The translations under genes were made by a program, and so were the position numbers. DNA of 64,000 nt, from the NCBI RefSeq assembly GCF_006345805.1, contig NC_043009.1, positions 44,144,001 through 44,208,000 of the forward strand. The letters run 5' to 3'. The DNA comes from Octopus sinensis (taxonomy: Eukaryota). Shown here one piece after another: positions 1-46,398 of the stretch (the stretch's first letter is position 1; each line of letters begins with the position of its first letter). The notes beneath the pieces were generated by a model. That model was not told the origin of the DNA. It did no database searches and saw only the letters and a list, made by a program, of their open reading frames with translations.

Positions 1-129
1 ACAAGATAAATGAAAACAAAAGTAAGACTGTTAAGTCTTTTATGCTCCTAATGAAGATGAGGAAAGAGAGGGTTACGTGGGAGGGGGGTTGAGAGTACGG
101 GGGGGGGGGCAGAGAGTGGAGAGAACAGG

Positions 130-350
130 AGGCTGAGCAGAGACTTCTGTTGTTGTTGTTGCTTGATGATGGTCATTAAGTGTACTGGAATCTACAGTAA
201 GCTTACTGGCCTAAATCTGTTGTTATGGTTATTGTTGTTGTTGCCTTAACTTATAATTGGTCCTGAAATATTCACCACCAATGCCACCACCACCACCACC
301 ACCGACATCACCACCACCAGCATCATCATCACTAAGAACAACAGTAAAAC

Positions 351-383
<33 letters not shown>

Positions 384-514
384 CGAGAAAATATGTAAAA
401 TTTTGATGAAGGTAGCCTGTTATTTGGTGGCTTGGTGCACTTAATAACCAGCTGCTCCTGACAATATATCTTATATATATATATATATATACATACATAC
501 CTATATATATATAT

Positions 515-545
<31 letters not shown>

Positions 546-723
546 GGATCATCATATTATCACGCTAAATGAATGATGAATGATGATGATAATATATATA
601 TATATATATAATATATATATGTGTGTGTATATATATATATAGGTATGTATGTATGTATATATATATATATATATCATCATCATCATCATCATCATCGTTT
701 ATAGGTATGTATATATATAGGTA

Positions 724-779
<56 letters not shown>

Positions 780-1681
780 TATGTGTGTATATATATATAT
801 ATAGGTATGTATATAAACATGTGGCTGTGTGTATATAAAGTACATCTGTAAAGATAAGGATTCTTGTCAAAGAAGTGACAAGGCAGGGAAGTAAAATAAA
901 AATAATAAATAAAGGGAGGAAGGTGAGAGAAGAGACAAAAATGTGGGAGAGAAGGAGAGGGAATGGTGATAGTGGTGGTGGTGGTGGTGGTGGTGGTGGT
1001 AGTGCCATGTTAACTGAAGGAGGTTAAAGCATTGTCTTGAGAACTGGAGCATTTGGGTTTTAGTGCAAAAATCAGGATGCTGATGGTGGTGGTGGTGGGG
1101 TGGTGGTGGTGGAGGTTGTGGTGGTAGAGGTGCAGCTGCTAGTGGTGATGATGATGATGATGGAGGTTGTAGTGCTGGTGATGGTGATGATGATGATGAT
1201 GGTAGTAGTGGTGATAATGGTAACTGCAGTGATGATGATGAGTGTTGTGATGACATGGCCGATGATGACAGCAGCAGTGGTGGTGGTGGTGGTGATAATG
1301 ATGACAGCAATGATGGTGATGACAGTGTTGTGATGACATTGATGATGATGATAGCAGCAGTGGTGACAGTGGCAGTGGTGGTGGTGATGACAACAACGAT
1401 TGGTGATGACAGTGTTGTGATGACGTTGATGATGACAACCATTATCATCATCACCATGAAGATATGAAGATGGCAACGAGGAGGATGACGACAAACGTGA
1501 TGATGAGGATGAGGTAGGTGATGAGGAGGGCAACGGTGGTGGGAATGGTGTGATTAGCAAGTTTTGAGTGCACCTCCACCTCCACACAGCTGATGAAGAA
1601 GAGATAGCAGTATGCATACATATGCACACATATATATACAAATATATATACACATGTACACACGTACACACATATACAGAT

Positions 1682-1716
<35 letters not shown>

Positions 1717-1881
1717 CATACATGTACAAATATGCATATATATGCATACATATATATATACATACACATGTATGTATATACAAATGCACACACACACATA
1801 TATATATATACGTTTATACATACAAATGTACATATATATATACATACATATACATGTATACAAATATACATATATACCTAC

Positions 1882-1919
<38 letters not shown>

Positions 1920-2250
1920 ATACATATATACACATATGCACATGCACATACATATGCACACACCCATATACATACATGCATGCATACATACACACACACA
2001 CACACACCCATATACACAAATATATATATATTTTTCATATCCATGTGTATAAGCGACTGCGATGCACAAACAATAGACTGACTGACAGACAGACAGAAAG
2101 GTGTTTGTGTCTGTGTTGAAGACCAAAATGCTGCCACTGAGTGCAGTAATGTTACATGTGATGGATGTGTGTTCCAAATGCCTCCATACAATGGCCTTTA
2201 TGACGCAAGAGGGTGGCGGCGGTGGTGGTGGTGGTGGTGATGTAGTTGAT
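130..2250. repeat. Compound microsatellite field: (TA)n, (CA)n, (GGT)n, (GAT)n with short unique spacers
   Basis: Visible simple repeats; source of many spurious ORFs. Confidence 0.95.
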
Positions 2251-2285
2251 GGGAACCAGTCTTAATTCTTTGATATTTCAATATA

Positions 2286-2710
2286 GGCGCAGGAGTGGCT
2301 GTGTGGAAAGTAGCTTGTTTACCAACCACATGGCTCTGGGTTCAGTCCCACTGTGTGGCACCTTGGGCAAGTGTCTTCTACTATAGCCCCGGGCCGACCA
2401 AAGCCTTGTGAGTGGATTTGGTAGACGGAAACTGAAAGAAGCCCGTCGTATATATGTATATATCTATATATATGCGTGTGTGTGTTTGTGTGTCTGTGTT
2501 TGTCCCCCTAGCATTGCTTGACAACTGATGCTGGTGTGTTTATGTCCCCGTTACTTAGCGGTTCAGCAAAAGAGACCGATAGAATAAGTACTGGGATTAC
2601 AAAAGAATAAGTCCCGGGCTTACAAAAGAATAAGTCCCGGGGTCGAGTTGCTCGTTTAAAGGCGGTGCTCCAGCATGGCCGCAGTCAAATGACTGAACCA
2701 AGTAAAAGAG
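2286..2710 (+). mobile_element. tRNA-derived SINE, family A (GGCGCAGGAGTGGCTGTGTGG...TGACTGAA(A/C)CAAGTAAAAGA)
   Basis: Pol III A-box TGGCTGTGTGG and B-box GGTTCAGTCCC, internal (TA/TG)n; many further copies, e.g. ~7050-7390(-), 7780-8155(-), 8470-8845(+), 9045-9450(+), 9670-10075(-), 23255-23640(+), 36668-37025(+), 61135-61480(+). Confidence 0.9.
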
Positions 2711-3096
2711 TATATCAGAGTCAAAGAATGGAGCAGGGAATGGCTGAAAACAGAAGAATGCCAAAGTTAATATATCTCACACTACTTACTTTTGATTCTT
2801 CACATACCAAGTTCAAAACTCACCAGAGTCACCTTTAAATTCTTTCCTTTGAAGTTATCAAATTAATTAAATAAATTTGAAAACCTAAATTTCTCTTTTA
2901 TCCTAGAGGAGCATTTGTACTTTCACAACATATATCAGTCCTGATCATATCTATGATCATTGATATTTCCTTCTGACCTTGTGCTTTCCCTTCGAAAAAT
3001 TCAAGGACAGCGCCTGCATACATACATATGCACATAATACATACATATGTACATAATACATACATATGTACATACATACATATGTACATACATATG

Positions 3097-3133
<37 letters not shown>

Positions 3134-3869
3134 GTATGTACAAACATACATACATACACTGTGGGCCTCTTTCAGTTTCCATCCATCAAATCCACTCACA
3201 AAGTTTTGGACAGACTGGGAAACAGAAGACACTTTCCCAAGGCACTATGCAGTGGAACTGAACCTAAAACCACATGGTTGAGAAGAATTTCCAACCATAA
3301 GTTTCAGTTGTTTGGTAACTAACTACTAATTCAATGAATAGGTGTGTAAGTGGCCAAGTATTCCATAGACATGTGTACCCTTAATCTTCAGGCAGAATCA
3401 GTGTGACAATGTGTGTCAAAAGTGACCCCTTAAATTACAGGTACGATCCATCAGAAGAGCTTCCACACAGTTTCCATCTACCCTATTTCACTAACAAAAT
3501 AAACACCTTTAATCTCATTATCCTTTATTGGTTCCAGTCATCAGACTGGTCATGCTGGAGAAACACTATGAAGAGTTTTAGTTGATTTTATCAACCTCAC
3601 CCCCAGCCCCGCCTCTCCAGTACTTGTCTGAGCCTTCTTTTATTGACCTCACAGAAAAACTGAAAAGTAAAGTCAAGTAGTTGTAACTGAGACAGAACAA
3701 AATACTCAGTGGCATTTTCATTTGCCATTTATTTTGCCATTCCATGCTGACAAACTCACACACACACTCATTATAATCAGTACCCCCTCACTCATTCCCT
3801 ATTGCTGTCTTTCACTTTTACCATACATTCTTGCAACACTTACCCACCCAAACTTCCAATTCTGTACCC

Positions 3870-4470
3870 ATTCACTTCTATTTACCAACATTCGGAATGC
3901 TCACAGCAGCCATATTCCTACCGCTCTATGTCACGCTGGTGAGACCCATATTGGAGTACAGGATTCAAGCCTCTTCTCCTTATCTCCTCAAAGACATACA
4001 TCATCTGGAAAGAGTTCAAAAGCTGGCTACCCGCATGGTTCTTGGTCTCAAGCATTTGTCTTATGAAGAAAGGCTGAAGACGCTCGACCTTTATTCTCTA
4101 GAAAAACGACGACGACGTGGTGATCTCATTCTTGCTCACAACATCATAAGCGAAAAGTATAACCTCTCGAAAGAGCTGTTCTTCACTCCTGCTCCAGAGC
4201 ATCGGCTGCGGGGTCACTCCGAAAAGCTCTATCTGCGACGATTTCATCTCAATCGAAGGAGAGGGGCTTTCTCCGTCCGGGTTGCGGATCCGTGGAATAA
4301 GCTGCCGGACGAGATAGTGAAGATGCCGACGACCACTCGGTTCAAAGTCTCCCTTGACTACAAATGGCCTGAACTCTTTACATGAACACCACCCTGTTCA
4401 TAACTCCATGTTCCCCTACATGGCCTTGCTTTTTGCTTTTTGAGCCCAAAAATTAACTAACTAACTAACT
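3870..4470 (+). mobile_element. 5'-truncated CR1-clade LINE: ORF2 C-terminus, 3' UTR and (CTAA)n tail
   Basis: ORF 3831-4385 has LVRPILEY..WSPY-like, LERVQK.ATRMV.GL..LSYEERLK.L.LYSLEKRR.RGDLI and FS.RV..PWNKLP; tail at ~4452-4470. Confidence 0.9.
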
Positions 4471-4639
4471 TGTACCTTCACTATCCACCCAACTACTTCA
4501 TCCCCAATATTTTATCTCCTTTCCAGCTCCACCTGGTATTCCTGTCTTCTCTTCTATGATATAAGTAGTTATAGAGCTCACCTACAGTGTAGAAAAGAAA
4601 AACTTGTCTTGTTATGGCCCCTTCTCTCATAATTTAATC

Positions 4640-5110
4640 TCTCAAAACTCTACTTGTGAAGACCTGTTGAGGCAAGTGAGAATCGAAATCGATCAACATC
4701 AATGGAAATTGTAGCTGTGATACCAGTGCCGGTGGCACATAAGAGAACCATCCGAACGTGGCCGTTGCCAGCACCGCCCCGACTGGCCTCGTGCTGGTGG
4801 CACGTGAAAAGCACCATCCATTCGTGGTCATTGCCAGCCTCACCTGGCCCCCGTGCTGGTGGCACGTAAAAAGCACCATCCAATCGTGGCCGTTTGCCAG
4901 CCCCGTCTGGCACCTGTGTTGGTGACACGTAAAAAGCACCCACTACACTCACGGAGTGGTTGGTGTTAGAAAGGGCATCCAGCCGTAGAAACATTGCCAG
5001 ATCAGACTGGGCCTGGTGCAGCCTTCTGACTTCCCAGACCCCAGTTGAACCATCCAACCCATGCTAGCATGGAAAGCGGACGCTAAACGATGATGATGAT
5101 GATGATGATG
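4640..5110 (+). mobile_element. Family B retroelement 3' end (SINE or truncated RTE-type LINE) with internal GGCACGTAAAAAGCACC repeats and (GAT)n tail
   Basis: Conserved block GGTTGG(C/T)GTTAG(G/A)AAGGGCATCCAGC...GCATGGAAAGCGGACG(T/C)TAAACGATGATG; copies at ~12470-12790(-), 20080-20295(+), 22350-22830(-), 32950-33250(+), 39100-39495(+), 47815-48225(-), 57240-57590(+), 61835-62125(-), 62335-62505(+), 63600-63915(-). Confidence 0.85.
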
Positions 5111-5707
5111 ATCTCTGGGCATAAAGCTGCCTCCTGCCCTACTGTAACCCTACTCAGCTGAAATGGATCTTTAGTCTTGGAAGCAGCTTGGTGTCTCACT
5201 TGTGCTGGTGCCATGAAAAAAACACCCAGTACACTCTGTAAAGCGGTTGGAGTTAGGAAGAATCTGTACCAAAGTAGACACTGAAGCACAATATAGTCTT
5301 CAGACCAGTCAGATCCTATCAAATTGTCCAAGCATAGAAGACAGATATTAAAAAATGATGATGGTTGCTTTGACTTTGCCTCGAGCCCTCAGCACTTGAT
5401 ATGGTTGTGGGGTCTCTACTGTGACATACGGTATGTCTTGGGTACTTTTTATCCTGGTGGTACCCATCCCTCTCTAAGTCTAACCACAGTTGATTTCTTC
5501 CAGAAGAAAGACAGACAAGACAAGAGAGAGAGAGTGAGAAAAAGAGTAGTATCAACCCCAGTACAGGGCTGGTACTTTATCAAGTCCCAAAGGATGAAAG
5601 GCAAACTTGACCTTGGTGGGATTTGAAATCAGGACACGCAGAACTAGAACATGAACTTCTGCAAGGCAACTGACCTGGTGCTCTAACAGTTCAGCCACTT
5701 CACTACC

Positions 5708-5740
<33 letters not shown>

Positions 5741-7132
5741 TATACATGTGTGAATGTGTCTATGTATGTGTGCATGAGTGTGTCTATGCATGCATGTGTG
5801 TGTTTATGTATGCATGCATGTGTGTGCCTATGTATGCCTAATGTGTGTGTCTATACATGTGTGAGTGTCTATGTATGCATGCATGTGTATGTGTGTGTCT
5901 ATGTATCCAATGTATGTGTCTATATATGTGTGTGTGAATGAGTCATGAGCTTCCACACAGTTTTTATTACCTGACCCTAGGGCTAACGTAAAAGATTTTC
6001 ACCCAAGTGTCGCACTCCAGGATTGAACCCTGAAACCTCACGACTGCAAAGTACAGTGAACATCTTAAACAACACAGCCATACTTATGAGACCAAATTCT
6101 TAACCACACCACCATCATAAAAAAAAGCTGCAGGAACCAATTTTTTTGTGTTTTTCATTTTCCTACTGCTTGAAAGTTCTACAGAAGAGAAGAGAAAGCT
6201 GAAAAATAGAAACACTAGGAACTGTTGTCTGTTTAGCAATGTTTAGAACTGTTGTTCTTGGGAACAAAGAGATATCTGTCACTGTGCCAAACAAACAAAT
6301 AACTCTGTGTATTATATATATTATAATATACACCAAGGCATGATGAAATGGTGTCATCCCGCATCTTGTTCTTGTTCTTCAGCCAAAGCAGAGCAAAGTA
6401 AAGTGTTTAAGTTGTAGCGCATGTAGCTTGTGAATGGTTTAACAGTAATCATCTAACCGATGGTTTAATGAGATAAACACCATAACACTCTTCCTAATGA
6501 AAAGAATTATTATTCTCCTAGGTGACTGTATGCTGATGATGATGATGAGGAGGAGGAGGGAGAGATTATGATGGTAAGTATGATGAGGATGAGGAGGAGA
6601 GAAGAGGTTTATGATGGTGATGATGATGACAATGATTATGAGGAAGAGGGTGGTAATAACAATGATGATAAATATGAAGATGATGATGATGATAAAGAGT
6701 TGGGAAGAATGGTAATAACAGTGATGAAACTGATGATAACGACAATGATTACAAGAAGGATGGTGATGTCAATGATGATGATGATCATCATCATCATCAT
6801 CATCATGATCTGGAGGAGAAGAAGGTTGACCCACAGCATGGGTCACCAAACTACAGCCCACGGCATCAATTTGTCCAGCCCGCCAATGTATGCTGAAAAA
6901 AATAAACATGTTTTTATACTGCTTCTTACACTTCTTAGATTACGCATGTTGTATGTATACTGAGTCAGTCACATCCACGCGCTACGTATTTCGCGCTCCG
7001 TGATAATTACTACAGTACATCACGTGTGCCTCAGGCTTGTCGGTTATTAGTGATTACAATAAAAACAAGAATATCTGACGACATCGGTTGTCAAGCGATG
7101 TTGGGGGGACAAACATAAACACACAAACATAT

Positions 7133-7223
<91 letters not shown>

Positions 7224-8149
7224 TACAACGGGTCTCTTTCAGTTTCCATCTACCAAATCCACTCACAAGGCTTTGGTCACCCCGAGGTTATAGTAGAAGA
7301 CATTTGCCCAAGGTGCCACGCAGTGGGAATGAACCCGGAACAATGTGGTTGGTAAGCAAGCTACTTACCACACAGCCACTCCTGCGCCTAATGTTTAGTT
7401 TGAACTGTAGCAACTTAATAATAGGTGAGTGAGTGGCAGTAGGGGGGGGGGACATAGATCTGGAGTGAGGCCCAGAGAAATATGCCTGGTGACTGCAAAG
7501 GTTGAGAAAAGTATTCAGTGTTGAGAGACTCAAGGTAGGAAGGGAGAAAACAAGAGAGTTGAAGTGGAGTTCAGGTCAATAAGTTCAGTAAGTGCTGGGA
7601 CTGTTATCACAACAGTGGTTGTTGTTAAAACCCCAGGTTAAAACTGACTGGCAAAACCCATGAGAAAAGGTGTTACTCCAGGGAGCTTCCTGCCTTTTTT
7701 TATATATTTTCATCCTAGCATGGTATATCCAGGACTACAAAATATCCAGTTTATCTCTTTCTTTTTTTATATATACTCTTTTTACCATCTTTTCACTCTT
7801 TTACTTGTTTCAGTCATTTGACTGTGGCCATGCTGGAGCACCGAGCAAATTGACCCCAGGAACTTATGCTTTGTAAGCCTAGTACTTATTCTATCCGTCT
7901 CTTTGTTCTGAACTGCTAAGTTACGGGGGACGTAAACACACTAGCATCGGTTGTCGAGCGATGTTGGGGGGAGAAACACAGACACACAAACATACACACA
8001 CACACACACATACATACATATCCACTCACAAGGCTTTGGTCAGCCCGAGGCTATAGAAGAAGACACTTGTCCAAGGTGCCACGCAGTGGGACTGAACCCG
8101 GAACCATGTGGTTGGTAAGCAAGTTACTTACCACACAGCCACTCCTACG

Positions 8150-8208
<59 letters not shown>

Positions 8209-8601
8209 GACCTCCTGATATTTGTTTTGTTTATTTCAGGGGGATCTAGAGGCAGGACTAAGATATTGTAATCCTATGCAATAATTCTTCAGTCAATGAC
8301 AGGGGTCTCCAACTGGCCCCTGGACAACAGTCTCTAAGGCTCTTACCTTAAATCAGTGCTGAAGGGATGAATAGCAGGATTTTAGACACAAAACAAAATG
8401 GTACAAAGCATCTAGTCTGGTGGTCTCCAAGAAGAAAATCTATGCAAATGCAAGATTAATGCATAACCAACCACATGGTTCTGGGTTCAGTCCCACTGCA
8501 TGGCATCTTGGGCAAGTGTCTTCTGCTATAGCCCTGGGCCGACCAATGCCTTGTGAGTGGATTTGGTAGACGGAAACTGAAAGAAACCTGTCGTATATAT
8601 G

Positions 8602-8642
<41 letters not shown>

Positions 8643-9205
8643 CTGTGTGTGTCTGTGTTTGTCCCCCTAGCATTGCTTGACAACCGATGCTGGTGTGTTT
8701 ACGTCCCCGTTACTTAGCGGTTCGGCAAAAGAGACCGATAGAATAAGTACTGGGCTTACAAAGAATAAGTCCCGGGGTCGATTTGCTTGACTAAAGGCGG
8801 TGCTCCAGCATGGCCGCAGTCAAATGACTGAACCAAGTAAAAGAAAGAAAGAAAGAAAGAATCCAAAAAATGTAAAATAATTAATAAAAATTTCTTAAAA
8901 AATATACAAAAACAAAAACAACGTACCCATTTTCAGATGCGGTTTTGGCAGGAATCAGAGTTTCAGAGGCTGAAAAGATAAAAGGTAGAAAATGTAAGGA
9001 ATAAACAACCCATAAAAGGCACAAAATGAAATAAATTGCATAATGAGTGCAGGCATGGCTGTGTGGTAAGAAGTTTGTTTCCCAATCACTCGGTTCCAGG
9101 TTCAGTCCCACTGTGTGGCACCTTGGGCAAGCATCTTCTACTCTAGCTTCGGGCTAACCAAAGCTTTGTGAATGGATTTAGTAGACAGAAACTGAGAGAA
9201 GCCCA

Positions 9206-17735: not shown

Positions 17736-18133
17736 CAGTACATTCTGTAACGTGGTTGGCATTAGGAAGAGCATCAAGCTGTAAAGACCAAGCCAAAGCA
17801 GACTATGGAACTTGGTGCTGCTTCTGGCCTTGCCAGTTCTTGTCAAGCCGTAAAACCCCTGCCAGCATGGAAAGCAGACATTAAATGTTGATGATGATGA
17901 TAATGAGTGTTTTGAAAAATCAAGATAGAGAATGTAGTGTTAGATATAAAATAATGGGGGAAAAAGACAGGACAGCTGTAGTTGGAACACCTTTAATTGT
18001 AGTTTTTCTTAATTGGGGCTGACGATAACAACAACAAAGACAGGCAATTACCTTAATAATAAAGTGTTCATTAAGATACAAATATTTACTACAACAACAA
18101 CAACAACAGTAATAAAGAAGTATTTCTGCTTAC

Positions 18134-18359
18134 TATGTGTAGAATTTTCTGTAGCTAGTTTGCGAAACGTAAATGATATTCTTGTTTCTCTTTTGACCAG
18201 AGTCATCGAACTGTCTGGAAGGGGTACAATGTCTGACTTTCTTGGAGTGATCCCATGGGACCAAATATATCTAGATTCTCCTGTCATTACTAGAAGACTT
18301 CTTTGTGGTAGGACTACACTCCTGTGATGACCATCAGGATGATGAAACTCCATGACAAC
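18134..18359 (-). CDS. ALKBH8: ALKBH8 exon 6 ([10 protein letters not shown]...[24 protein letters not shown]...[16 protein letters not shown])
   Basis: ctttatttcag acceptor, GTAAGC donor, 226 nt, phase 0/1; distal Fe-ligand His (WSHGI) and 2OG-binding RxSxTFR. Confidence 0.96.
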
Positions 18360-18571
18360 CTGAAATAAAGAACAACGAATGGAAATGAACCATTTGCCAA
18401 GATTCTTTGACAAAAGTGACAACAAAATTTTCCCATTTACATCTCTACAACAAGAATTCATAGGATTAACAGCAGTTCTAAAACAAAGTGTAATTTACTT
18501 TTTACTCATTTCTCATTTTGATTAATACTCAAATAAGTCATTGAAGATTTGTTCCTAGGTTTTGCTGAAGT

Positions 18572-19028
18572 GCACAGAAAGTGTGTCAATAGCCAGCTGG
18601 AGGAGGTGTCCTCCTGGGGGTACAAGCTACAGTAGCATCCACCCTTAGGGGTTAGCCACATTTAAGTGGCAAATATACTTCACGATGTTGTGCAGCTACT
18701 GTTTATACCTCGCTCAGAGATTTATTATTGCTTGTTTACACTTTTTCAATATCAGTGACTTTTCGTCACTGGAAAAAAAGGATATATATTTGCAAAGGGA
18801 ACCCACTTTTCATCAGCAATCAGTGATTGTCACATGCTGATGACGGGTCAATACCCAGAAACTCGAGTCCGTGTGTATCATGTCAGATTCAAGATGGGAT
18901 GGATGGCTTCCCTTTGCAAATACTGATAGGGCACAGAAAGTGTGTCAATAGCCAGCTGAAGGAGGTATCCTCCTGGGGCTACAAGCTACAGTAGCATCCA
19001 CCCTTAAGGGTTATCCACATTTAAGTTG

Positions 19029-19036
<8 letters not shown>
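18572..19036 (+). mobile_element. Retrozyme / Penelope pLTR-like unit with ~105-bp direct repeats (18572-18677, 18931-19036; period 359 bp)
   Basis: Near-identical direct repeats flank a hammerhead motif. Confidence 0.65.
18831..18875 (+). ncRNA. Minimal type I hammerhead ribozyme motif, GUC cleavage after 18869
   Basis: CACATG-CTGATGA-C-GGGT caat ACCC-A-GAAA-C TCGA G-TC|CGTGTG: 6-bp stem I, 4-bp stem II, palindromic stem III. Confidence 0.75.
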
Positions 19037-19061
<25 letters not shown>

Positions 19062-19564
19062 CACCACCCTAAAGGGTTTATTTTAATCATAAAATCGACC
19101 CCAGGACTTATTCTTTGTAAGCCTAGTACTTATTCTACCGGTCTCTTTAGAATAATGTCTTCTACTATAGACCAGTCAGGCCGAGTCTATAGTAGAAGAC
19201 ATTTTCCCAAGCTGCCACACAATGGGACTGAACCTGGAACCATGTGGTTGAGAAGCAAGCTTCTTACCACACAGCCATGCTTGCATGGTGTTCAGCATCT
19301 TTTAATTTGCAGAGAAATAGATTTTTCCTGTTTGTATGTACATATGTGTGTGCTTGTGTCTCTTGGTTTTTCACAAAGTGGAGGTTGTAAATGAGCACAA
19401 GCATATGCCGTTTGTTTCCAATATTCTACAAGAGATCGTCTGGTCATGGGGAAATATTACCTTGGTTGGTAAGGGTTGACTACAGCAAAGGCATCCAACC
19501 ATAGAAAAAAAGTGCCTCGACAAATTCTGTCTGACCCATACAAACATCGAAAAGTGTATAAATA

Positions 19565-19595
<31 letters not shown>

Positions 19596-19630
19596 ACGTG
19601 GTGTGTGAGTGTGTGTGTGTATGTGTGTGT

Positions 19631-19672
<42 letters not shown>

Positions 19673-20441
19673 GTGTGTGTGTGTGTGTGTATGTGTGTGT
19701 CACTACTACTTGACAACTGGTTTTGGATGTTTACATCCCTGTAACTAAACGGTTCGCCAAAACAGACCGGCAGAATAAGTACAAGGCTTAACAAAAAACA
19801 AATACTGGGGTCAATTCTACTAAAAATTCTTCAAGGCGGTGCCCCAGCATGGGCGAAGTCTAGTTGACTGGAACAAAAGATAAAATATATTCGCAGAAAT
19901 TTTCATTTTTCTGTAATTAAGGGACAAAACTTGTAAAATAAATATCCAGAGTTCTCTCCCTTGAAATACTAAAAATTTCATCACATTTCATTGCAGGAAG
20001 AGATATTAAGTATTAAAATGCTTCCAAGACGTAATACAGAAGAATCGACTACAAAAACTGAATTCCGTGACTGGACTGGTAGCACGTTTGATAGCCTCGT
20101 CTGGTACCTGAGCCGGTGGCACGTAAAAAGCACCCACTACACTCACGGAGTGGTTGGCGTTAGGAAGGCCATCCAGCCATAGAAACACTGCCAGATCAGA
20201 CTGGGCCTGGTGCAGCCTTCTGGCTTCCCAGATCCCAGTTGAACCGTCCAACCCATGCTAGCATGGAAAGCGGACGTTAAACGATGATGATGACGGTATG
20301 CAACAATCATATTAAATACTAATAGTTGTAGCCATTTCAGCAAACGAACTCTTACAGACCTCTAACCGTACACACACACAATAAACAAAAAGTTTGTAAG
20401 AATATTTAGAAAATAAAATTCTGTATAGTTCGAACTCTCAC

Positions 20442-20512
20442 CATAGAGCCAAGACTTAAAGAAACGATTCCATCTTCGAAAGCCGAAGGAGTATCTACAT
20501 GTGGTGGTATAC
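20442..20512 (-). CDS. ALKBH8: ALKBH8 exon 5 (GIPPHVDTPSAFEDGIVSLSLGSM), Fe(II)-binding HxD motif
   Basis: AG/GT boundaries, 71 nt, phase 1/0; HVD iron motif and SLSLGS. Confidence 0.96.
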
Positions 20513-21781: not shown

Positions 21782-21982
21782 CTTGTCCTGGTAAGTATTG
21801 GTTGACAGTCAGCTGGTCTGGACAGTGGTTAATTAATCCATGTTGCATAACCTTTGAAATTAATTTATCACATACTGGAGGGATTCCACACGGAAGAGGA
21901 GTGCTTGGATCAACATTGTTTGTGCTGTACAAGAACTCATATCCATAGTGCTTTGTTTTTCGGTGTTTCAAAGTTGTTTGGG
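21782..21982 (-). CDS. ALKBH8: ALKBH8 exon 4 (QTTLKHRKTKHYGYEFLYSTNNVD...PDQLTVNQYLPGQG)
   Basis: AG/GT boundaries, 201 nt, phase 1/1; LKHR..HYGYEF.Y..NNVD and PDQLTVNQY.PGQG are ALKBH8-specific motifs. Confidence 0.96.
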
Positions 21983-22985: not shown

Positions 22986-23111
22986 TTGGATTATCACAGT
23001 TGGCCCATTCTATAGCACTGATCAGCTGGGTTTCATAATCTTCACTGATGAAATCTTTCAGAAGAATCAAACCTGGTGGTAGGTCTGTGGATGGAACTAA
23101 GCACGATGGAA
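22986..23111 (-). CDS. ALKBH8: ALKBH8 exon 3 (PSCLVPSTDLPPGLILLKDFISEDYETQLISAIEWANCDNP)
   Basis: AG/GT boundaries, 126 nt, phase 1/1; LPPGL..DFIS is the start of the ALKBH8 AlkB domain. Confidence 0.92.
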
Positions 23112-26153: not shown

Positions 26154-26379
26154 TTGTCTTTAAAAAAGAAATATAGATGTTGTTTCCATTACTTAGTTTA
26201 GTACCGTTCAATTTATTGGCGGCCTGCACTGCATCTTCAGTAGAAAGGTAACATATAAAGGCATAAGGTCTTTGAGGCAGCATGATAATTTCTTCAGCAT
26301 GGACATCTTCACAGAAAGCCTCTTCTATTTCTTCCTTGCTCACACCAGTGTCCAGTCCACCATTGAATACACAAAGAAT
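26154..26379 (-). CDS. ALKBH8: ALKBH8 exon 2, RRM domain (ILCVFNGGLDTGVSKEEIEEAF...PQRPYAFICY...LNGTKLSNGNNIYISFLKT)
   Basis: ttttcctag acceptor, GTAAGT donor, 226 nt, phase 0 in / phase 1 out; matches ALKBH8 RRM motifs NGGLGNGVS and PNKPYSF. Confidence 0.93.
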
Positions 26380-34246: not shown

Positions 34247-34372
34247 ATTAGTTTGCTCATTCGATAAACTGATATTATCTAACTTGCGTAAAGTATGTCG
34301 ACATCGCTGAAGTTTTTTCTTCACTTTTTTGTCTATGATTATCGGCATACTGGCAGACATAGGCGCCGCCAT
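34247..34372 (-). CDS. ALKBH8: ALKBH8 coding exon 1 (MAAPMSASMPIIIDKKVKKKLQRCRHTLRKLDNISLSNEQTN)
   Basis: ATG at 34372, 126 nt, GTAAGA donor in phase 0 that joins exon 2 in frame; K/R-rich helix with HTL resembles the ALKBH8 N-terminus (KKFLRKQIKAKHTLL). Confidence 0.85.
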
Positions 34373-35669
34373 GATATAAAACCCCGCATTAAATATTGAG
34401 ACGAGCACATGCATGTACTTTCGTTTCAACTCAAAATTGAAGAGAGATTTTTGTCTGTTTTTGTTCAATAATTTTTATTTTTAAAATTAAAAATATATAG
34501 TATATAGTTTAAGCTAGAATTTTTAATATTTTTGTTTATTTATCATTATAAAATGCAACATTTCTCCGTAGACCGCTGGACGAGTTGTCTTGTAGTAATT
34601 GTGAGCTGGCAAGACGGTGAACACGTTGGCTAAAATGCTGCGCGGTCTTTCTTCCGGCTCTTTACATTTTGAGTTCAAATCCGGCCGAGATTACCTTTGC
34701 CTTTCATACTTTCAGGATAAAATAAAGTATTTGTCAAGTACTGAGTTCGATGTAATCGACTTACCCCCTCCACTAAAAATTACTGGTCTTCAACTAAGAA
34801 ATGGACTGGCATCCCGTTTCTGTGGGAAAGTTGTCATCTCGGTGATACGCCAGGGAAAACGAGTAACCGGCCTCATGAGTACGAGGGCTCGAGAAAAAAA
34901 TAAATAACTTGAGATCAACTTATCTAGGGAGGTCGATAAAAACAAAGCACCACTCAAATTCTGAATCGATATAATTTACTGTAGCCTTTCTTCGAAATTT
35001 GTAGATTTAAGTGGCTTTATACCTCTGTTAAAAATCTACGGGGTGGGCCAAAAGTCACGCACCAAAACATTTATATTACGTTATTAGAAGTAGAGCGGCG
35101 AGGCGAGCTGGCAAAGTGCTTAGAAGACATTTCGTCCGTCTTTACACTCTAAGTCGATAAAATAAGTAGCAGTTGAGCTCTGTCTTGCGCCAAAATTTGA
35201 ATCTATTATTTTATCTTTTACTTGTCTCAGTTATTTGACTGTGGCCATGCTGGGGCGCCACCTTGAAAGATTTTAGTGGAACAAATGGACCCAGGACTTT
35301 TTTTAAAGCCTAGTACTTATTCTATCGGTCTCTTAGCCGAACCGCTAAGTTACGGAGATGTAAACACACCGACACTGATTGTCAAGCGGTGGTGGGGACA
35401 AACACACACACACATATACACCTGCGCCTAGTTTCTTGCCAAGTATAGCAAGATGCAGGGCACCAAACTCAGAAAAGGCTGGAGTGCGCAATACGAGCCA
35501 AATAACAAAAAAATATATTAAGCTGAAAACAGGTGTCGTGTTCAAAGCGTTATGGGACATGCGCGCGTTTCATTAAAATGCTAAAATAATTACATAACAA
35601 ATGTAGAAATGCTATGTACCTGCCTTATTTATAAAGCTTTGAATACCACACCTGTTTTCTGCTTATATA

Positions 35670-44392: not shown

Positions 44393-44421
44393 CGTCTAAA
44401 ACATTTCTGCTCCCAAGTAGA

Positions 44422-44486
44422 ATGGCTGCCATCCGAGTTACCGTGGAGGCCTGCAAAAATTGGGAAAAAAATGGGAAAATAGAATT
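44422..44486 (+). CDS. THOC2: THO complex subunit 2, coding exon 1 (MAAIRVTVEACKNWEKNGKIEF)
   Basis: ATG at 44422, GTAAGT donor after TT (phase 2); resembles the recalled human THOC2 N-terminus [24 protein letters not shown]; preceded by a promoter-like motif cluster. Only 22 codons are visible. Confidence 0.8.
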
Positions 44487-46398
44487 GTAAGTAACGTATT
44501 ATCGATTGGTAATTTTACTTTTATCATCCACAATGGCACTCCAATAATTTCTAACATTCTATATTTATGCTTTTAACCTTAAAAGTTGTAACGGTTATTG
44601 TATATACATAACATACATAGAGGTATATATTTATATCTATCTATACAGATATATATACATATATATATGTATATATATACGTATGTATGTGCTTAGACGC
44701 CAAACGAGAGTCGGTTGTTGTACGTTATGTTATTTAATAAAAAAAAAGAAGCTTGCTTTGTAATTTTAGTTCATGCTTTTTGTCGATCCTTTTCAAATGA
44801 GACTTATTATTATTATTATTATTATTTGAGCAAATTATCGCTCATAAACAAAAGTTAAATGAAGCAAACTATATCAAGTTACTAACAATGTCCTCGGAAA
44901 GAAAGCATGAACATCACACAAACTCATTTTCTCTTCCCCCGTATAAGTCTAAATGGCAATGTTTCATAATTAAATGAAAGCCAAAAACATCGTATTTGTG
45001 AATAATTTGAGTATATTATCACTTACTAAGACATCTTGTAGACATGAACATCGTGTAATCTCATTTTTTTTATCACTTCTAATATATATCAGGCTTTATA
45101 TAAGAAATGAGTGTGCGCGTGTTTATAAATATAATTTTTTTTATCTCCTTAAACGTAATAATAACAGCCTGCTCAAATTTTTAAGATTTATTCTTCAACC
45201 TCTATAATAAAATAATCGTTTTGACATGAAAGTTAGAATGATTTAAGGTAGAAAAACTTGCGGAAAAAGAAATGTATATTTACTGATCAGGGGAATAAGC
45301 CTCTACGTGGTCACACGAGCTGCTAGAAAAAACAAGTCATATTTTCCTTAACCCAGTACTGTCTTAATTGAAGAAGGATACCTAAAAACAAGCTGTCTGT
45401 GCTATGCAGAAATAAAAAAGGAAAAGAAAAACTGAACGATCACGGATGGAACGCTTTTGATTCTATGTCTACTCGATTTCGGTCTGGAGCTAAACAACAA
45501 AGATACCAATACTTATACATAGGTCCTGCTCTGTCAGGAAATGACCTGGGACTAATCAACTACCATCACACCGCCACCACGAGTGAACGAAATAGCCACT
45601 AAGTTGCTCCACTTGCTAGAAACAGCAGTAAAAAATTTACTTTATCATTCTGATAAACATTATCTTCGTTATTATTATTATTATTGTTGTTGTTGTTGGA
45701 CAGGTCAGGCGTGATCAAATAGACTTATGGTCAAAGGCTTTCCAGTTACCACCATCCCGTCCTTGTTTCGGACATTGTATATCCTAAACTACACGTCCCA
45801 ATGTGTCCTCTTTTCGAGACGGTAGAGTGTATATTTGAGAGAGAATTTACTGTTATTTCTCACATCTTGAGCTACCCACCCGTGTTATAATATTTAGTGT
45901 TGGTAGTGTTGGCTGTTCTCGTGTTTTGGGTTTTTTTAATATAATATCGTTTTGATACAGACTAAAATTCTCTACTATTTTTGAAAATTAGACAAATTAT
46001 ATCGTCCGACTCCCCTACTTCTGATACCGAGCGATCTCTCCTGTTGCGTATTATCCGCGTTAGTAGGGAGTGTGTATGTATATATATATATATATAGTTG
46101 TGTGTGTGCATATACACCGTATGAATCTATATAGGTAGATAGATGCACGTGTGTGTGTATTTATAACCGTTGTACTCATTTCAATGTTTTATTGCTTTTC
46201 ACTTGGTTAAAGTACTTTGCAATAACAGTATTTCCTTACTTTTGTCAACATGAATTATTCTCGACAAATTTAATAGATGTTATATATATATATATATATA
46301 TATATATTTAGAATATAGTTGACTGGTTGTTTTATCTGTTAATGGATTTTATATAGACTTAACATTCGTATCTCTTAGCATATCTATCTATCTGTTTA

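Follow-up and report, generated by a model that had tools for sequence, protein, structure and literature searches.

ALKBH8 is a bifunctional tRNA wobble-uridine enzyme composed of an RRM, an AlkB-type hydroxylase and a Trm9-like methyltransferase. The enzyme converts 5-carboxymethyluridine (cm5U) to 5-methoxycarbonylmethyluridine (mcm5U), and mcm5U to its hydroxylated form, (S)-5-methoxycarbonylhydroxymethyluridine ((S)-mchm5U), in tRNA-Gly(UCC). The human protein also carries a structural zinc knuckle, i.e., the zinc finger (ZnF), of which we take His242 to be the fourth ligand. Its zinc-coordinating cysteines are Cys341, Cys343, and Cys349 (Zdzalik et al. 2014, PMC4051686). The ZnF was reported to raise protein stability, and the human triple Cys-to-Ala knuckle mutant hydroxylated mcm5U normally, while RRM deletion abolished the activity (PMC4051686). 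The RRM/AlkB/ZnF architecture is ancient and was found in plants, Cryptosporidium, and animals; ALKBH8 of Tetrahymena thermophila has no ZnF and still hydroxylates mcm5U (PMC4051686). In the present analysis, a window of 64,000 nucleotides of Octopus sinensis DNA (contig NC_043009.1 of assembly GCF_006345805.1, positions 44,144,001 to 44,208,000 of the forward strand) was searched. The stretch 18134-20512 of this window lies inside a minus-strand ALKBH8 gene, and its two limits coincide exactly with the exon 6 end and the exon 5 start. In this gene, the structural Zn(Cys3His) knuckle is gone and the catalytic residues are kept.

Residues were compared in an alignment of 49 sequences (35 molluscs and 14 outgroups), which was numbered on the gibbon orthologue. 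At the position of human His242, the octopus protein has Pro235 (CCT, 20489-20487). Ser323 (18143-18141) stands at the position of Cys341 and His325 (18137-18135) at that of Cys343. Exon 6 ends with the tail KLATENSTH and a phase-1 donor, A/GTAAGC. The following exon 7 encodes neither Cys nor His, and human Cys349 has no octopus counterpart. In Octopus bimaculoides, no cysteine occurs in the 44 residues that lead from FRK to HVHQVY, a motif of the methyltransferase. Given the three changes, i.e., His to Pro, Cys to Ser, and Cys to His, and the Cys-free exon 7, all four zinc ligands are therefore absent. The Fe ligands His231, Asp233, and His285 and the motif R310-x-S-x-T-F-R316 were all present.

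A sequence-only reading of this DNA had noticed HVDTP in exon 5 and an exon 6 that ends at a phase-1 intron, and both agree with the minus-strand translation and the GTAAGC donor. The changes H242->P, C341->S, and C343->H, which it had counted from FRK, were the same residues as in the alignment, and its intact HxD, distal His, and RxSxTFR were found as described above. The loss of the structural zinc site that it proposed was confirmed and is fuller than it saw, as exon 7 leaves the third cysteine missing too. Judged from these residues, it is reasonable to consider that octopus and other mollusc ALKBH8 proteins would not bind structural zinc.

The region covers the middle part of an ALKBH8 gene that is intact and whose orthology is secure. 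As the knuckle is a conserved accessory of ALKBH8 and has no catalytic part, the gene is filed as a knuckle-less ALKBH8 variant. Exons were located by tblastn with database proteins and a human ALKBH8 sequence, the latter as a probe only. Seven exons were located in the window, and every border was AG...GT with compatible phases. Their product of 339 residues was identical at 332 of 339 positions (98%), ungapped, to residues 1-339 of O. bimaculoides ALKBH8 isoform X1, and the inferred splice junctions are therefore those of the annotated model. Pfam 2OG-FeII_Oxy_2 was recognized in the octopus product at 74.9 bits (cut-off 31.2). In phmmer search of PDB, human ALKBH8 (3THP/3THT) was found with E=6e-30, against 1e-8 for Ofd2. 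By Foldseek of an AlphaFold model of the octopus orthologue, 3THP/3THT was found at E ~5e-30, against 7e-13 for ALKBH6, and the C-terminal half of this model matched Trm9-Trm112 (5CM2) with a template modelling (TM) score of 0.88.

The methyltransferase domain was present in the O. bimaculoides protein (by Pfam), and Argonauta and every full-length mollusc orthologue have it as well. By tblastn with methyltransferase-bearing ALKBH8 proteins (human, mussel, and others), no methyltransferase exon was found in the window, and none in 1-8926. The start of the window is probably passed before these exons are reached, and intron 7 would therefore be longer than 8.9 kb. Exon 7 was found only via the O. 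bimaculoides protein. A tblastx comparison of the window downstream of exon 6 with 25 kb of cuttlefish downstream sequence gave low-complexity matches only. A pseudogene reading of octopus ALKBH8 was also considered and rejected.

It could be thought that the missing cysteines are a gene-model artefact, i.e., that exon 6 ends elsewhere in true transcripts, or is joined there to a different exon 7, and CxC...C is restored. The sequence-only reading had no transcript evidence, intron 6 is long (9.2 kb; 9164 nucleotides), and exon 7 is short and easily missed. However, no usable alternative donor exists between FRK and GTAAGC. The sole GT there (tac/GTTTCG) is poor and would remove the conserved FR, and read-through past the exon 6 donor adds no Cys. 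A different 3' end of exon 6 that restores CxC, which had been named as a way for the proposed loss to fail, was thus not found. In addition, the protein models of O. bimaculoides and Argonauta share the junction and the Cys-free exon 7, and the Cys-free junction also appears in a full-length decapodiform transcript (P0393) and in a probable gastropod transcript (P0009). The His to Pro change in exon 5 is independent of splicing. Such an artefact is therefore extremely improbable.

Several of the compared gene models and transcripts had peculiarities of their own. The SRR26439020 contig from Logan (L001, 1263 nucleotides) has an in-frame stop directly upstream of the RRM and G/GTGATA right after FRKLTPNA, and is probably a partly spliced mRNA with introns retained at both ends. 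The KLTPNAG tail of this transcript (P0009) resembles gastropod tails. In the deposited cuttlefish model (P0001), only the first 16 residues of exon 6 are followed correctly before low-complexity junk sets in, although an intact exon 6 is placed at 34887-35121 of the cuttlefish locus L002 (GCA_903632075.3, gene 10001-50569). In the Mytilus model P0038 (L003, Mytilus galloprovincialis, 5415-6034), there are six tandem copies of an exon encoding VGSDRSVNLSEICHGRSHE, which are probably an assembly or annotation artefact.

The distribution of the loss was then followed across taxa. In an initial database search, cuttlefish and Mytilus showed the same two changes as octopus; sea urchin, the annelid Ridgeia, vertebrates, and arthropods retained HxDTH and CxCx5CDS. 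Because the NCBI model P0001 was mis-predicted at this place, the cuttlefish exon 6 was read directly from the genome. It ends with ...FTFRKLVNPDHQVPCQ/GTGAGC, in phase 1 as in octopus. The mussel genomic exon 6 ends with ...FRKIIHPKDRIGRIVPFQTS; a small linker exon comes next, ahead of the methyltransferase exons. In an exhaustive HMMER search of 1.84 billion representatives, the matches right after cuttlefish were the scallop Ylistrum, the caenogastropods Pomacea and Batillaria, and the pulmonate Lymnaea, all without the zinc ligands and all with the methyltransferase domain.

The last search used a full-length mollusc profile and recovered 39 named mollusc species. These include the chiton Liolophura, the protobranch Solemya, scallops, pearl and true oysters, an ark shell, mussels, unionids, and venerids. 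Also included are Lottia, Patella, three Haliotis species, Gigantopelta, caenogastropods, and many heterobranchs, with limpets, abalone, snails, and slugs covered in this way, and the cephalopods Argonauta hians and Octopus bimaculoides. Both the His and the Cys triad were missing in every one of the species (39/39). A second, Zn-bearing mollusc ALKBH8 paralogue was considered and rejected, as none occurred among the named matches. Position 242 is mostly Pro in molluscs, with V, I, T, R, G or L in derived groups, and Pro is probably the ancestral mollusc state. The closest outgroups, i.e., the nemerteans Lineus and Tubulanus, the brachiopod Lingula, and the annelid Ridgeia, keep the His and PCxCx[FY]PxxCDSQ. 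Echinoderms, hemichordates, vertebrates, and arthropods keep the His and the triad too.

Every sampled mollusc is without the ligands, and the loss is therefore not special to the octopus lineage. The sequence-only reading had implied a lineage-specific loss and had named a general lack of the ligands in molluscan orthologs as the result that would speak against it; this general lack is what the 39 species show. An octopod- or cephalopod-specific coordinated loss that marks a newly remodelled C-terminus is accordingly very improbable. The substitutions are real and coordinated in the octopus gene, and cephalopod tails after FRK are unlike those of other molluscs. However, the ligands are lost in chiton, bivalves, and gastropods as well, and the commonest mollusc residue at 242 is Pro. 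The linker is variable, without metal ligands, and predicted to be disordered, and the protein, as seen in O. bimaculoides, runs on into a standard methyltransferase domain. The simplest reading of these sequences is that the knuckle would have been lost once, in the mollusc stem lineage, i.e., phylum-wide as sampled and not as an octopus novelty.

The loss was specific to the knuckle. Among approximately 660 aligned positions, nine columns were invariant or nearly so in the 14 outgroups and essentially gone in the 35 molluscs. Eight of these nine belong to the knuckle, i.e., His242, Arg337, Cys341, Cys343, Pro346, Cys349, Asp350, and Ser351. The knuckle was therefore lost as a module, with the remaining protein under constraint. 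The ninth column, which falls outside the window, is His597 of the C-terminal VPWHLK motif, which is Gln in most molluscs and Thr in cephalopods (VPWTKK).

The histidine and the cysteines also varied together, which is not a matter of chance. Of 312 homologues that span both sites, 227 had the His and the triad, 78 had neither, and the triad without the His was never found (0), although the homologues so counted lack phylogenetic independence. In 7/312, the His was found and no triad was detected; these were mostly truncated isoforms or regular-expression misses. Further cases of the loss were seen in a leech, a calcareous sponge, aphid paralogues, and many other lineages. This recurrent joint loss supports His242 as a functional partner of the cysteines, as far as co-variation can indicate. 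A signature can be given from the comparison, i.e., His242 with R-x3-C-x-C-x2-P-x2-C-D-S, in which co-variation independently picks out His242.

Some of the non-mollusc sequences can be described individually. In the leech Helobdella robusta (P0243), a convergent His to Pro change (HVDTPEVF) and loss of the Cys triad were found; the annelid Ridgeia piscesae (P0005) keeps both. The zinc site is also lost in the sponge Sycon (P0266, HVDTSWAF). ALKBH8-like RRM-AlkB paralogues of aphids and adelgids (P0070, P0086, P0101, P0102, P0104, P0111, and P0116) are without the knuckle and are fused to DnaJ (PF00226) and a DPH-type zinc finger (PF05207) in place of the methyltransferase.

In molluscs, the segment that follows the AlkB domain has become a variable linker. 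Mollusc linkers were 30-48 residues long (median 36.5) with 0-2 scattered Cys, and outgroup linkers 39-49 residues (median 42) with 3-4 Cys. Conservation within the mollusc linker was limited to sub-clades, i.e., KIIHPKDRI in pteriomorph bivalves, KL[ST]xxAG in several gastropods, and KLASENS in octopods. In the AlphaFold model of the Octopus protein, successive 10-residue blocks after FRK had predicted local distance difference test (pLDDT) values of 47/36/50, and residues 324-347 were below 50 with no secondary structure. With the same 49 sequences, the Lingula model had pLDDT of 87/76/80 after FRK and no stretch below 50. No evidence was thus seen for the remodelled C-terminus of the sequence-only reading. 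The segment is a variable, predicted-disordered linker that leads into an ordinary Trm9-like methyltransferase domain, as seen in the 98%-identical O. bimaculoides protein.

The lost ligands might have been replaced by a metal or structural site built from other residues, e.g., the octopus His-rich loop EFHHPDGHH together with His325. Octopus does have extra histidines by the loop of the double-stranded beta-helix and one in the tail. However, these histidines are unconserved in other molluscs (consensus DFRHPDGRHLS; EFSHPGGQQIS in Mytilus), and the tail is predicted to be disordered. A replacement site of this kind is considered very unlikely.

The best explanation overall, which we consider highly probable, is that ALKBH8 is intact, that the knuckle was lost once in the mollusc stem, and that the linker now acts as a tether. 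In most eukaryotic ALKBH8s, the structural knuckle clamps the segment after the last AlkB strand onto the AlkB core. A single loss in the stem of Mollusca would then have been inherited by each living class sampled. The former knuckle would now be a variable, probably disordered and presumably flexible tether of approximately 30-48 residues from the hydroxylase to the methyltransferase. Most likely, mollusc ALKBH8 would still hydroxylate mcm5U, as a fully functional hydroxylase/methyltransferase minus a stabilising clamp.

Some points weigh against this explanation. The AlphaFold contrast is suggestive at most, as it comes from a shallow 49-sequence alignment with predicted TM (pTM) scores of 0.47-0.60 and metals are outside the method. 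Aplacophorans, monoplacophorans, scaphopods, and Nautilus lie outside the mollusc sampling. His242 as the fourth ligand is backed here solely by co-variation, and the methyltransferase exons in the O. sinensis genome are presumed from its congener O. bimaculoides. For the mollusc enzyme, we infer zinc content, stability, and activity alike.

It was also considered whether the hydroxylase half of the mollusc enzyme is decaying, by relaxed selection or loss of function, with the knuckle loss as the first symptom. A conserved structural element was indeed lost, and position 242 drifts after the loss (P, V, I, T, R, G, L). However, HxD...H, RxSxTFR, and the RRM have stayed invariant in all the molluscs for more than 500 million years, and differences from the outgroups are confined to the knuckle columns. 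Identity between the two Octopus species is 98% across 339 residues, and the human Cys-to-Ala mutant is active (PMC4051686). There is little chance that decay is the cause.

Beyond the explanation by a simple loss, the coupling of hydroxylase and methyltransferase may have been altered when the zinc clamp disappeared in the earliest molluscs, i.e., stability, redox or zinc sensitivity, or tRNA channelling between the active sites. This is an unlikely proposal. If it were true, tRNA-Gly(UCC) of molluscs would have another balance of mcm5U to (S)-mchm5U than that of other animals, and the knuckle elsewhere in animals would be regulatory, not purely structural.

Little is understood of the role of the knuckle, which plants, apicomplexans, and vertebrates alike have conserved although its mutation spares in vitro activity. 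ALKBH8 without a ZnF was already known in protists and bacteria, and the ZnF was known to be dispensable in vitro (PMC4051686). What appears to be new is a whole animal phylum without the knuckle and with every other domain kept. In the literature searched, the sole paper naming both ALKBH8 and molluscs concerns m6A motifs. A mollusc phylum that has lived for more than half a billion years without the knuckle is a natural experiment, and suggests that the knuckle is unneeded for the essential in vivo function of the enzyme. The further consequence is modest. Apart from the knuckle, the octopus gene is unremarkable, and no hint of a new activity was seen.

The located exons are listed in Table 1.

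Table 1. Exons of the Octopus sinensis ALKBH8 gene located in the window (positions are those of the window).
Feature	Position	Strand	Description
ALKBH8 exon 1	34247..34372	-	Holds the start codon (34372); MAAPMSASMPIIIDKKVKKKLQRCRHTLRKLDNISLSNEQTN; N-terminal basic helix; located by tblastn with O. bimaculoides and cuttlefish proteins; GTAAGA donor
ALKBH8 exon 2	26154..26379	-	RRM domain; Pfam RRM_1 23.8 bits (cut-off 20.7); aligns with human and cuttlefish RRM
ALKBH8 exon 3	22986..23111	-	RRM-AlkB connector and start of AlkB domain
ALKBH8 exon 4	21782..21982	-	AlkB domain, LKHRKTKHYGYEF...PGQ
ALKBH8 exon 5	20442..20512	-	GIPPHVDTPSAFEDGIVSLSLGSM (minus-strand translation); contains GIPPHVDTPSAFEDG; Fe ligands His231 (20501-20499) and Asp233 (20495-20493)
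ALKBH8 exon 6	18134..18359	-	Begins VVMEFHH; distal Fe ligand His285 (18257-18255); RISFTFR (18182-18162)
ALKBH8 exon 7	8927..8969	-	Linker exon of 43 nucleotides, (T)SETLIPAKTASEN(G); acceptor ttttcag/CC, donor GG/gtacgt; tblastn with O. bimaculoides P0398

The DNA of the window has approximately 38% GC, is rich in microsatellites, and contains abundant repeats that resemble short interspersed nuclear elements (SINEs). Intron 5 holds two direct copies, of approximately 110 bp each, of one element (gcacagaaagtgtgtcaatagccagctg...ccacatttaag) at ~18571-18680 and ~18931-19040, i.e., approximately 360 bp apart. A long (TG)n tract is placed at ~19560-19700, and SINE-like ends (...catggaaagcrgacrttaaa...gatgatgatga) were found at ~17862-17900 and ~20255-20295. 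On the plus strand, a conserved block at 44395-44493 (MAAIRxTVEACKNWEKNGKIEL) showed 90% amino-acid identity to positions 8674-8772 of the cuttlefish locus L002, where the counterpart lies at the start of the gene that carries the Pfam domains of THOC2. Octopus and cuttlefish thus share a conserved head-to-head arrangement of ALKBH8 and THOC2, with approximately 10 kb between the two genes.

Compared with known systems, the octopus protein has the layout of human ALKBH8 (3THP/3THT), i.e., a basic N-terminal helix, an RRM, an AlkB double-stranded beta-helix with HxD...H and RxSxTFR, a linker, and, as presumed from O. bimaculoides, a methyltransferase. The two are approximately 40% identical across RRM-AlkB. 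However, none of human His242, Cys341, Cys343, and Cys349 and the flanking R337, P346, D350, and S351 occurs in octopus or in any mollusc. In function, the natural mollusc protein is best compared with the human C341A/C343A/C349A mutant. This mutant is likewise knuckle-less with RRM and AlkB intact, and it is active on mcm5U in vitro (PMC4051686). The mutant differs in that it is engineered and keeps His242 and the knuckle backbone, whereas molluscs swapped the whole motif for variable sequence.

The AlkB-only ALKBH8 of Tetrahymena thermophila and bacterial ALKBH8-like proteins are naturally without the ZnF, like those of molluscs (PMC4051686). These proteins lack the RRM and the methyltransferase, whereas the mollusc proteins keep both. 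Octopus ALKBH8 is not of this minimal AlkB-only class, as an RRM was found, the orthologue has a methyltransferase domain, and only the ZnF is missing. Helobdella, Sycon, and the aphid paralogues have lost the His and the Cys triad jointly as molluscs have, and the leech has the same His to Pro change. Their losses are independent and concern single lineages or paralogues, whereas the mollusc loss covers the phylum as sampled.

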